Below, piece after piece: positions 10,374-49,245 of a stretch of 64,000 bases of DNA (positions are counted from its first letter, which is position 1; each line of letters starts with the position of its first letter). The stretch spans positions 57,660,001 to 57,724,000 of the forward strand of contig OZ365109.1 in assembly GCA_977030845.1 (NCBI GenBank). The letters run 5' to 3'. Both the position numbers and the translations under genes were made by a program. The notes beneath the pieces are model-generated. The model had not been told where the DNA came from. It made no database searches and worked only from the letters and a program-made list of their open reading frames with translations. The DNA is from Fimbriosthenelais zetlandica (taxonomy: Eukaryota).

Positions 10374-13300
10374 ATGAGGGGGCTTCTGTTTGTTTCACTT
10401 GTCCTAGGCTCAGTGGCCTCAGCTTCGACAGTAAGTTGACTTTTTATTTATTCTAATTCAACTTATGTGTTCATAAGTAATTGTTCATCTAAAATAGGGG
10501 GCTTACAATTCATTCTCAGATATGTCCATATTTTATTTTGCAGCAGGAATCCAATGTAAATGTTTCCCGAGCGACCAGTAAGTAGTCCATGTATATATAT
10601 TGAGATGTAATAATGCTTTTGGCAAATACAATTTTTAATTTTTAAAAATTATTTTCCTATTCTAGTCCAGGGAGGCTGTTTTCCCCATGTTTATTTGGAG
10701 CAGCTGAACTCACAGCCTGATAAACATATCAGGATATTTAAGGACTACAGATTTGGTTGTCCTGGTGAGATCTCCGCCTGGAGGTACTATGCTGGTAAGA
10801 TTGGAACCTTCATGGCTGGTGTCTGGAGGCAGCAGGATGATGGTCAGGTCGAGCTCATAGGAAAAAATGTCATCGAAGTCAAAGTACCTGGACTCCAAAC
10901 ATACATGGTACCAGGACATCTACGATTCAGGTGAGGTTTTTCTTTAATTGATTGTCTGATTCATTTATTCATTCATTCATTCATTCATTCAACTTTCCAA
11001 TTACACATTCATTCATTCGTCCGGTCATGTCAATGTCGTTCAGGGTTGGACATTATACAGAGGCCATCTAAAATCTATTCACTATTCACGATTCACTCAT
11101 TCATTCGTTCGTTCCTTCGAACGTTCGTTACTTCGATCGTTCATTCATTCATTCATTCACTCATCCATTTGCATAATATTTATTCATTTGTACGATTGTT
11201 CATGGCAATGTCTAAAAGTCTCACTCTGGACATCACATAGGCTTATTTATCATCTATTCACCTCATTAAATCCATCCGTTGAAAGACGCACAGTTCATTT
11301 ATTCTTTCATCCTCCCATTCGTTTCATCATAGACGCTTGTTATACGTCTATGGTTTCATTACGGTATCCATATTTTCATTTTCTGGCAGCAATTTATTCT
11401 CTTGCTGTTGATGGTATTTTAGAAAAGCTCCACTTGCAAGATTCATACGGCAATGATCCCTGGTGGATACTTCATTAGAATACCAGCTCATTAGAGGTAC
11501 CCACTAGATATTCATGAATTGCAATTCTTGCAAAATTGTATAGGCTACACATGTGCTCCAATGTCTCTCCAATGTCACCTATATGGAGTCGGGGGCAGGT
11601 ACACATTTTGTCAACGAAGAGCCCAATTGCTAGCATTTTGACTTCTTATTCTTTCATTATCTGGCGGCAATTTATTTACTTGAGGTTGATGGTATAGTAG
11701 ACAATATTATCAAGCTCCAATTGTACCTGCTTTTGAATCATTGTATTCTATACATCTAACTAATATACCTTCTTTTAATCTAGAGCCCGTGCTGGAGATA
11801 TGATCAGCATCCATTACTCGGACGAGGCCTCTGAAAGTGTGGTTATGTTAGATGATGATCGATACAATGTCAATGGTAGGACAGGTCTGACGGACACATA
11901 CTCTAGTCCAACCACTCTCTACGACTCTGATCTACCAGTGGGAACCAGGGCCCACATCTTTGATGTCAAGCCTGCTGGACCAGAAGATGTATATAACTTT
12001 GAGAAACTCTCCCATCGTACAATGCCTGCCCTCCAGCCTATCTACAACAAAAGTCTGTTGGCTAACTATGTTTACTTTTTAATTTATAAAATGTTATTTT
12101 TATTTAATAGCTCTTGGAGGATTTTCGTTAAGATGCACATCAATGATATTGCTTATATTTCCTCATGCAAAAATTGGGTGCCTGTGGCAGTGTGGGGCTA
12201 CACGTGGTTGTCATATGTTCCGTTAAAAATGTTTTGATTTTCTAAATGTAAACTGTCGATATTTTCGCCCCCAGTGTCTGTGAGATTGGATGGTGGACTG
12301 AGTGAGAACGAAGGACGTGCCATGTTTGAAGCTAATGGAGTCTGGGGAACAATTTGTGACAGTAACCCACATAATGCCAACTGGCCAGCTATCTTCTGTG
12401 CTCAACTGGGATATGATCATGTGGAATCAATTGATGTGAGTCCAAATTCTTCTTCTATTCTTAACTTGTGCGTTCCATATAATTACTGGAAAGCCTATAT
12501 TTATCAATTTTCTATTTTGAGACAGTGAATATTATTTTTAAATAATTACCCAATCTATAGTTTTTCTCACATTTGGAAACTGTTGAATTTTATAATAATC
12601 TAATTCTTCAGACTTCCCATGTGAAGGACGGGAAGGGGCCAGTCACTTTCCAGAATCCAGATTGTGCTGGGAGTCAGTTTATGGATTTATGTGCTGCATC
12701 TGGCTCCTGTAACCATGATAATGACGTTTATCTCAAATGTTCCCGTGAGTAAATAATGTCTAACATGTTAGGTTGTTTGATAAAATGAAACAAATCTCAA
12801 TTAATGACAATAATATTTTAATGGTATTATATTAAGTTGTGTCTGTTTAAAGATGCTGTGAGGCTGGAAGCGGGTGTGAATGGAGCTGAGGGTAGAGCCA
12901 TGTTCTATAACGACCAACAGTGGGGAACTGTGTGTGCTCAACACAATAAGAAACAAGGCTTCGCTTCTGTTTTCTGTCATGAATTAGGCTACGATCACGC
13001 TGTCAAAGTATCCAAGGTTTGCCATCAATTATTCTGGTATTTGCCACTTTATTAATGTATTTTCAAGTTTTTTTTCAGATTATATACTAGCTAGGAAATA
13101 AAAAAAGACTGGTTCATTCTGCAGGAATAATTAGAAAATAATTAGGCCTACATTTGCACCAAAATTGTGAACGATCTTGCCGATCCTGGCCCTCCCCTCT
13201 ATTCCTATATCCTGGATACCACATCTGTTTCCTAAAATATTCGAAAGAATTTATGACTTATTTGACCGGTAGTTCTAATATGTAGGCCAAGGATGAATAT

Positions 13301-48900: not shown

Positions 48901-49245
48901 ATACGAAACCCAGAAACCAATGTGGATGGTTGGACCAAGTCCATGTCTGGTTGTCAATGTTCGTTTGACCTGTCAGCCACTGACTGTGCCTGTTGTCAGA
49001 ACCTCGGTTGTCCCTGCCCTGCTACTAATAAGAACCAGTGTGTCACCTGTGGTCACAAAGAACACTGTGGCACCAAAGAGAATATCTTTGGTAGCAATCC
49101 ATACTGTGAACCCACGACTTGCCCTCGGAAGGTGTCCACTGTCTGGGACGATCATCCACACCTGATAAAGAAACCTGTGGAAGTACACCCAAAGGCCAAT
49201 GAAACATTCGTGGAAGACACTGAAAAAGTCCTTAATCTCGAGTGA
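30974..49245 (+). CDS. Gene B: tandem paralogue of gene A (about 2648 aa, 51 coding exons), same domain order
   Basis: Signal peptide [19 protein letters not shown]. The 51 hand-joined GT-AG exons sum to 7947 nt (divisible by 3), with stop TGA at 49243-49245. SRCR 32355-34855, EGF 35054-35587, AbfB 35791-36433, crystallins 36695-38031 and 43874-44297, PAN 39592-40110 and 44513-44809, WSC 41552-42037, VWA 45810-46825 (DASGS, TDG), F5/8C 47162-48116, 10-Cys modules 40218-40394 and 48572-49245. Confidence 0.88.
35319..35419. repeat. Short palindromic insertion with telomere-like internal units
   Basis: 13-bp perfect inverted repeats gggtgggagcgcc (35319-35331) and ggcgctcccaccc (35407-35419) enclose two ttagggttag blocks. 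It lies in intron 11 of gene B. Confidence 0.6.
35791..36433 (+). other. Gene B: AbfB/CBM42-like beta-trefoil domain
   Basis: [36 protein letters not shown]...YASDASFFI matches the AbfB signature F..vPGL....VSFE...PG.YLR....L......DA.F. Confidence 0.8.

Follow-up and report, generated by a model that had tools for sequence, protein, structure and literature searches.

A tandem pair of 290-kDa secreted mosaic proteins in Fimbriosthenelais zetlandica, putative multivalent cross-linkers of extracellular glycans and matrix

The temporary-adhesion proteins of sea stars (Sfp1) and flatworms (Mlig-ap1 and Mlig-ap2) are very large, are secreted, contain 4-11% Cys and act as adhesives, and the two flatworm proteins are co-expressed in one cell type (PMC6410801). 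Here we describe two tandem genes, A and B, in a 64,000-nucleotide stretch of DNA from Fimbriosthenelais zetlandica (GenBank assembly GCA_977030845.1, contig OZ365109.1, positions 57,660,001 to 57,724,000 of the forward strand; hereafter the window), each predicted to encode a secreted mosaic protein of about 2650 amino acids (aa). Like Sfp1 and the Mlig-ap proteins, the A and B products combine lectin, calcium-binding EGF and metal-binding domains and are rich in Cys. The adhesive proteins, in contrast, are built on VWD-C8-TIL, TSP1 or long Lys/Arg repeats, and their homology to A and B is limited to common domain families. Such large, Cys-rich temporary-adhesive mosaics appear, by analogy, to be the closest functional analogues of A and B. 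We consider it probable, on what the same domain families do elsewhere, that A and B are multivalent, calcium-dependent extracellular cross-linkers of glycans and matrix molecules.

The window is AT-rich (about 38% GC) and holds only four open reading frames (ORFs) of at least 150 aa in its 64 kb, which indicates intron-rich eukaryotic DNA. When stop-to-stop plus-strand segments from positions 10000-30200 were compared with those from 30200-49600 using BLASTP, 44 collinear blocks were recovered, with E values down to 1e-51 and identities of 28-64%. This is far above chance, and genes A and B are therefore two tandem paralogues. Splice models were built using a dynamic-programming exon chainer with GT-AG introns, codon log-odds trained on the conserved blocks, and splice-site matrices, over three rounds of retraining; start and stop codons alone were fixed beforehand, taken from an earlier annotation of this DNA (the original prediction). 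Alignment of the A and B proteins was used to correct seven exon boundaries at which the exon of one copy was over-extended and a site of the same phase was present at the paralogous position. The models and associated features are as follows.

10374-30127, plus strand: gene A, with ATG at 10374, stop codon at 30125-30127, 51 exons, 2658 aa, about 291 kDa, isoelectric point 5.5 and 115 Cys
30974-49245, plus strand: gene B, with ATG at 30974, stop codon at 49243-49245, 50 exons, 2635 aa, about 289 kDa, isoelectric point 5.5 and 123 Cys
10310-10316, plus strand: TATA-like box (TATATAA) 58 nucleotides (nt) 5' of the gene A ATG, a consensus match only
27304-27330, plus strand: exon 45 of gene A, a 27-nt micro-exon
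46980-47006, plus strand: candidate 27-nt micro-exon of gene B, with AG/GT flanks and open in frame

These models reproduce the coordinates, the size of about 2650 aa and the 846-bp spacer of the two plus-strand genes that had been proposed. The median intron is 197 nt in gene A and 174 nt in gene B, the longest is 853 nt, and all are GT-AG; in each gene the coding sequence runs without an in-frame stop over about 8 kb. The two proteins are 44.7% identical over 2597 columns of a global alignment and are collinear exon by exon, and their intron-phase strings match everywhere except at one junction (introns 27-28) and one 27-nt micro-exon. The junction, 19954-20073 in A and 41405-41552 in B, is the sole intron to differ in position and phase; it lies at the end of the first PEMCVT module (see below), with a shift of about seven codons, and reflects either intron sliding or a leftover model error. 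Exon 2 of each gene (34 nt in A, 19 nt in B) was placed by splice logic alone. At the position of the A micro-exon, an intronless Tara Oceans metatranscript (L005) has nine residues. The B candidate, on the other hand, is no better than chance, as about one such site is expected in that intron. L005 joins A exons 44-51 exactly as modelled, micro-exon included, with 45-75% identity. This collinearity confirms the 3' quarter of the gene model and shows that another marine animal transcribes a member of the family.

Both proteins begin with a predicted signal peptide that obeys the -3/-1 rule ([17 protein letters not shown] before ST in A; [19 protein letters not shown] before KP in B). Outside the signal peptides the highest Kyte-Doolittle mean over 19 residues is 1.25, and there is therefore no membrane segment in A or B; their polar C-termini make a glycosylphosphatidylinositol (GPI) signal unlikely. 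The originally predicted combination of a signal peptide with neither a transmembrane segment nor a GPI tail is thus upheld in each copy. The mature chains are about 290 kDa and acidic, with 4.3% Cys in A and 4.7% in B, and contain no furin or RGD sites.

The order of modules was established from Pfam matches exon by exon together with the A/B comparison, and is exactly that of the original prediction. Pfam scans were made on single exons, since the modules are split across exons. The modules, with A coordinates first, are listed in chain order.

10374-10430, plus strand: signal peptide, A exon 1, with a hydrophobic core and A-x-A before the predicted cleavage site; B 30974-31036
10666-12052, plus strand: N-domain, about 177 aa, A exons 3-4; B 31358-32177; A/B identity 38%
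12275-14138, plus strand: three SRCR domains, A exons 5-10; B 32355-34855; Pfam SRCR
14266-14687, plus strand: EGF and calcium-binding EGF, A exons 11-12, one each; B 35054-35587; Pfam EGF, 36.9 and 34.7 bits against a cut-off of 21.5
14817-15395, plus strand: AbfB-like (beta-trefoil, CBM42) position, A exons 13-14; B 35803-36433
15497-16432, plus strand: beta/gamma-crystallins 1 and 2, A exons 15-18, one Greek-key motif per exon; B 36695-38031; Pfam Crystall, E 2.3e-4 to 0.04
16568-17725, plus strand: module U, 215 aa with 4 Cys, A exons 19-22; B 38390-39424; A/B identity 45%
18002-18480, plus strand: PAN/apple-like 1, A exons 23-24; B 39592-40110; Pfam PAN_4, PAN_1 and PAN_2, E 7.6e-4 to 0.012, sub-threshold
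18805-18981, plus strand: 10-Cys copy 1, A exon 25; B 40218-40394
19178-19954, plus strand: PEMCVT 1, about 117 aa with 4 Cys, A exons 26-27; B 40657-41405; no Pfam match
20073-20631, plus strand: WSC, A exons 28-29; B 41552-42037; Pfam WSC in two halves
21050-22033, plus strand: three CxxGG repeats, one per exon, A exons 30-32; B 42176-42982; pattern C-x3-GG...C-x3/4-C; no Pfam match
22551-23501, plus strand: PEMCVT 2, A exons 33-35; B 43108-43721
23662-24178, plus strand: beta/gamma-crystallin 3, A exons 36-37; B 43874-44297; Pfam Crystall, 25.3 and 22.4 bits against a cut-off of 25
24417-24713, plus strand: PAN/apple-like 2, A exon 38; B 44513-44809; A/B identity 61%; PAN_4 E 3.8e-4 and PAN_1 E 4.1e-3, sub-threshold
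24926-25525, plus strand: crystallin-like pair of 37-aa exons with a linker, A exons 39-41; B 44919-45718; no Pfam match
25742-27003, plus strand: VWA, A exons 42-44; B 45810-46825; Pfam VWA, 31.1 and 38.2 bits against a cut-off of 23.8
27455-28717, plus strand: F5/8 type C (F5/8C, discoidin), A exons 46-49; B 47162-48116; F5_F8_type_C on exon 48, 29.7 bits against a cut-off of 28.2
29137-30127, plus strand: 10-Cys copies 2 and 3 and a tail with two more Cys, A exons 50-51; B 48572-49245

SRCR, EGF, crystallin, WSC, VWA and F5/8C were all recognized by Pfam as had been proposed, whereas AbfB was recognized in B only and PAN remained sub-threshold. Each SRCR domain spans two exons (pairs 5-6, 7-8 and 9-10) and has 6 Cys, the group A type; the first-half exons scored 27.0, 30.7 and 35.8 bits against the Pfam cut-off of 26.1. 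The second EGF of both proteins conforms to the calcium-binding EGF consensus (D-x-D/N-E-C start, C-x-D/N-x4-F/Y-x-C), with an N-I-D-D/E-C start and an N-G-Y-x-C site. Exon 14 of B matched the AbfB profile at E 7.7e-8 (33 bits, cut-off 22.8), and the AbfB position is the least conserved module, with 19% A/B identity. All six A crystallin motif exons scanned (15-18, 36 and 37) matched the correct half of Crystall, at E values from 1.7e-5 to 0.04, one of them reaching the cut-off alone. The crystallin calcium motif, N/D-N/D-x-x-S/T-S, is present in crystallin 3 (NNKASS in A, NDKTSS in B) and degenerate in crystallins 1 and 2. The two halves of WSC cover profile positions 1-44 (21.8 bits) and 45-82 (22.7 bits); each falls below the cut-off of 27.8, and jointly they make up the whole profile. 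The metal-ion-dependent adhesion site (MIDAS) of the VWA domain, DxSxS...T...D, is complete in both copies (DASSS in A and DASGS in B, plus the T and D residues). In L005, the intronless collinear relative, F5/8C reached 56.6 bits.

The original prediction of secreted multi-module proteins with glycan-, metal- and matrix-binding domains is consistent with these Pfam domains and with the intact MIDAS and calcium motifs. Its functional proposal, an adhesive, mucus, tube, biomineral-matrix or pattern-recognition scaffold that possibly acts as an A/B pair, is sensible but not specific. The ligands of the named domain families in other contexts are glycans, polyanions, metals and matrix proteins. 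A soluble 290-kDa chain with about 20 binding-type modules is most simply understood as a multivalent extracellular cross-linker. A and B would each be a soluble, secreted, acidic glycoprotein of about 290 kDa, one chain of which would carry many weak binding sites in a fixed order: SRCR, calcium-binding EGF, AbfB-type beta-trefoil, beta/gamma-crystallins, PAN, WSC, VWA-MIDAS and discoidin. The likely ligand classes are those bound by the same domain families elsewhere. With cross-linking as the presumed mode of action, such a chain could hold carbohydrate-rich polymers together in a secreted layer (a coat, glue, mucus or cuticle) or cause particles and microbes to clump. The terminal 10-Cys pair might allow covalent multimerization, judging from its place in other proteins, which is that of the cystine knot in gel-forming mucins.

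Six module types had no Pfam match in either copy: the N-domain, U, 10-Cys, PEMCVT, CxxGG and the crystallin-like pair. The N-domain also had no sequence match in the PDB, and its sole leads in the protein Atlas were weak ones, towards lectin-like families of beta-sandwich type (PHR, Lectin_like and DUF4082, scores 0.74-0.77). Module U had neither a PDB sequence match nor a protein Atlas lead. Within PEMCVT 1, A and B share the stretch [10 protein letters not shown] letter for letter. Two alignments of A with B, one over the PEMCVT exon and one over U exon 21, were used to scan metagenome contigs and gave no match. The crystallin-like pair, on the other hand, is kept in a second genomic locus (L013, described below).

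The 10-Cys module is about 60 aa long, with the consensus W-T-x3-T-G-C-x-C-x-F-D...D-C-A-C-C...G-G-C-Q-C...Q-C-V-x-C-G...C-G, and its first copy is the best conserved module of the locus (66% A/B identity). It was found in proteins of an annelid, a nemertean, molluscs, a brachiopod, arthropods, a starfish, a tunicate, amphioxus and the unicellular holozoan Corallochytrium; the starfish carrier is named mannose-receptor-like. Its usual form is a C-terminal tandem pair, often after a discoidin domain, and F5/8C followed by two 10-Cys copies is a common C-terminal cassette. Upstream, these proteins differ greatly, with VWD-C8-TIL, D8C-VWD-EGF, SUEL with 22 PAN, Fz-Ig-trypsin or CUB. AlphaFold, using 67 sequences, gave a confident small alpha/beta model for the 10-Cys module of A exon 50 (pLDDT, predicted local distance difference test, 82.6). 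Nothing significant matched this model in Foldseek searches of the PDB, Swiss-Prot AlphaFold models and AlphaFold DB clusters, or in VIA-align searches of 48,161 chains; very small disulfide-rich domains are hard for fold searches. The 10-Cys module had no model in the Pfam version used, a PDB profile search was blank, and the protein Atlas gave no lead. The predicted structure is therefore suggestive, not proof, of a new fold. We consider 10-Cys a candidate new domain family, unnamed so far, which deserves a family definition and a structure. PF26386, listed for a Dimorphilus protein, is a different family from 10-Cys, as protein P0002 has two 10-Cys copies without PF26386. A 3260-aa protein with SdrD B-like and carboxypeptidase-regulatory-like repeats (P0007) gave 19 short matches to the 10-Cys query; these are probably an effect of repeats or composition, not homology.

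The original prediction had called the architecture unrecognized, with no described protein like it. This holds for the whole chain, which was not found in our searches, and not for its C-terminal third, which recurs elsewhere, nor for the common F5/8C and double 10-Cys cassette. The full architecture was absent among 150 clusters from an exhaustive phmmer search with exon 51, and literature searches for the domain combination found nothing relevant. A word-index search for long proteins with the C-terminal region of a 3398-aa Dimorphilus protein matched only that protein itself, and a search with the L005 ORF matched only P0002 and vertebrate collagen VI VWA domains. The remaining short matches lie on contigs too short to be informative.

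One match, P0026, lies on contig JARPMW010001806.1 (GCA_029980185.1; also GCA_013332975.1 and ENA ERZ23486783; loci L010 and L013). As in A, crystallin 3, PAN, the crystallin-like pair, VWA, F5/8C and two 10-Cys copies follow one another in the same order, with 34-65% identity to A residues from about 1780 to 2620. The contig differs from the A/B locus in coming from a GC-rich genome (55%) and in having extra introns within PAN and the last exon. The introns of L013 (1-17605) hold long simple repeats of GT/CA type. Nothing similar to the upstream part of about 1750 aa, from the N-domain to PEMCVT 2, was found within 7.3 kb 5' of crystallin 3 in L013. The order shared with L013 shows that the C-terminal third is an old conserved unit. 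L005 (Ga0192992_10016388, 1450 nt, with one frameshift in the contig) shares the C-terminal half of VWA, the nine-residue insert, F5/8C and two 10-Cys copies with A and B, at 53% identity to A and 47% to B. In a tree, A, B, L005 and L013 form a clade apart from other F5/8C-10-Cys proteins, with 91/91 support.

More distant relatives share less. DgyrCDS10690 of Dimorphilus gyrociliatus (CAD5122242.1) and XP_074657383.1 of Tubulanus polymorphus share the C-terminal F5/8C and double 10-Cys cassette, at 37-60% identity, whereas their upstream parts are unrelated to A and B, consisting of SUEL lectins and 22 PAN in Dimorphilus and of mucin-type VWD-C8-TIL in Tubulanus. VWDE-like proteins of molluscs and brachiopods (Haliotis rubra XP_046567313.1, Lingula anatina XP_013419235.1) likewise end in a tandem 10-Cys pair, but are about 1000 aa long, with D8C, VWD and tenascin-type EGF upstream and no other module in common. 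Proteins of the AIM1/CRYBG family carry beta/gamma-crystallin repeats beside a beta-trefoil, which is ricin-type and C-terminal, and are cytoplasmic or cytoskeletal. In A and B the trefoil also adjoins the crystallins, but it is AbfB-type, N-terminal to them and extracellular.

The intron pattern bears on how the chain arose. Phase 1 introns make up 28 of the 50, and nearly all modules are phase 1-1; modules bounded in this way indicate assembly by exon shuffling. In BLASTP comparisons each A module is closest to the B module at the same position, and the full order therefore predates the duplication. Cys columns are conserved in 109 of 127 cases (86%) and Trp columns in 69%, against an overall A/B identity of 44.7%. 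The proportion of nonsynonymous differences between A and B (pN) is 0.37, and that of synonymous differences (pS) 0.76, which is saturated, and a dN/dS ratio is thus not computable; dN/dS is nevertheless clearly well below 1. Both copies are under purifying selection, in agreement with the proposal that they are intact and under long-term selection. Over the C-terminal 420 aa, unique changes number 56 in B and 30 in A (p 0.005), and branch lengths are 0.27 versus 0.63-0.72, with B longer. On these sequences the asymmetry would mean either that B evolves faster or that L005 is orthologous to A, and the tree does not separate the two. The locus is a clean textbook case in which modules were shuffled in phase 1-1 and the resulting gene was later, but still anciently, duplicated in tandem with both copies kept.

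Several points weigh against A and B as cross-linkers of glycans and matrix. The six unmatched module types, about 40% of the length, are without known function. On inspection, the acidic cation-binding cluster of ligand-binding SRCR domains is not conserved in most of the SRCR copies. A exons 13-14 have no AbfB match in Pfam at E <=0.1, the module having decayed beyond detection. The PAN assignment appears weakly supported by sequence comparison: when PAN 2 was aligned with 13 true PAN repeats of protein P0022 using hhalign, the core alone aligned (23 columns, probability 30%), and an AlphaFold model of PAN 2 from a two-sequence alignment was unusable (pLDDT 41). VWD, C8 and TIL, hallmarks of the best-studied glues and mucins, were not found in the A or B exons scanned; nor did any of these exons match a cystine knot in Pfam, and on these scans A and B are not of the gel-forming mucin/VWF type.

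Finally, the same domain set fits a humoral immune agglutinin equally well. DMBT1 and insect hemolectin aggregate or immobilize microbes, and A and B could do likewise as pattern-recognition, agglutinin or clotting factors in body fluid or on epithelia, with their SRCR, WSC, PAN, discoidin and trefoil domains binding microbial glycans. A tandem duplication with faster change in one copy, as in the excess of unique substitutions in B, would agree with such a role, as would the presence of 10-Cys in the starfish mannose-receptor-like protein. However, the rate asymmetry is equally expected if L005 is the orthologue of A. Furthermore, there are two copies only, very old as judged by synonymous saturation, rather than a recent expanding family; Cys and module order have been strictly retained, and signs of diversifying selection are absent. 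We regard an immune role as possible but unlikely.

A bolder version of the cross-linker proposal, which we put forward as a doubtful speculation, is that A and B are the two chains of a single extracellular polymer linked by covalent bonds, a fibre or glue of neither mucin nor collagen type, with the terminal 10-Cys pair as a hitherto undescribed, disulfide-rich multimerization knot and the N-domain, U and PEMCVT as new folds with ligands of their own. If this were true, a 10-Cys knot conserved between chordates and a unicellular animal relative would take the part that the cystine knot plays in mucins.

It is very unlikely that A and B are gamete or egg-coat proteins, a large extracellular pair within the egg envelope or a layer that binds sperm. 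Such coats do contain multi-lectin mosaics in which discoidin, EGF and PAN-like domains occur, and the related transcript comes from ocean plankton samples, in which eggs and larvae occur. Neither a ZP domain nor other hallmark domains are present in A and B, however, and conservation across distant genomes is unlike that of fast-evolving gamete recognition proteins. There is equally little reason to believe that the long models are artefacts that join several shorter genes at each locus, such as a separate C-terminal third. The lack of upstream-like modules within 7.3 kb of crystallin 3 in L013 would fit such a split. Against it, 49-50 short, phase-compatible introns per gene and about 8 kb of coding sequence without a stop are found independently in both copies, the intron that precedes crystallin 3, at about 155 nt, is too short to hold a promoter and a signal-peptide exon, and there is no internal segment resembling a signal peptide. 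Least probable of all is that U is an aerolysin-type pore-forming domain and A and B lectin-targeted pore formers: U does follow two crystallins, as the aerolysin-type domain does in amphibian crystallin-aerolysin proteins, and exon 21 has on inspection an alternating polar/hydrophobic, hairpin-like stretch, but none of the eight U exons matched Pfam aerolysin or ETX_MTX2 even at E 1 in single-exon scans, there was no PDB sequence match, and U lies mid-chain in 2650 aa without processing sites.

Three further features of the window lie outside genes A and B.

56203-58152, minus strand: intronless gene for a 650-aa BTB-BACK-Kelch protein, 7 kb downstream of B
6506-7480, plus strand: 324-aa ORF, acidic and Lys-rich, with repeated D-W-G / W-S-D-W-G motifs, strong A-over-T skew and no Pfam match
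50487-50936, plus strand: Thr/Ser/Glu-rich, mucin-like open stretch, 1.2 kb downstream of the B stop codon

Logan runs ERR14368248 and ERR14368249 contain a transcript, presumably of a related species, that is 86% identical to the Kelch gene. A 61% relative of the same gene lies on a 955-kb ENA contig, with no A/B-like sequence within 10 kb and no other flank in common. The 324-aa ORF is probably one large exon of an unrelated gene, and the mucin-like stretch may belong, as an exon, to another gene for a secreted protein.

Returning to genes A and B, the unit of about 850 aa at their C-termini (crystallin-PAN-crystallin-like-VWA-discoidin and two 10-Cys copies) defines an unnamed protein family across distant genomes. 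One-off domain orders produced by exon shuffling are ordinary in marine invertebrate genomes, and we regard the A/B pair as a fresh variant among the well-known "sticky" mosaics of invertebrates rather than as a novel type of molecule. The pair changes no concept, and provides useful candidates for glue, mucus, cuticle or immune proteomics.

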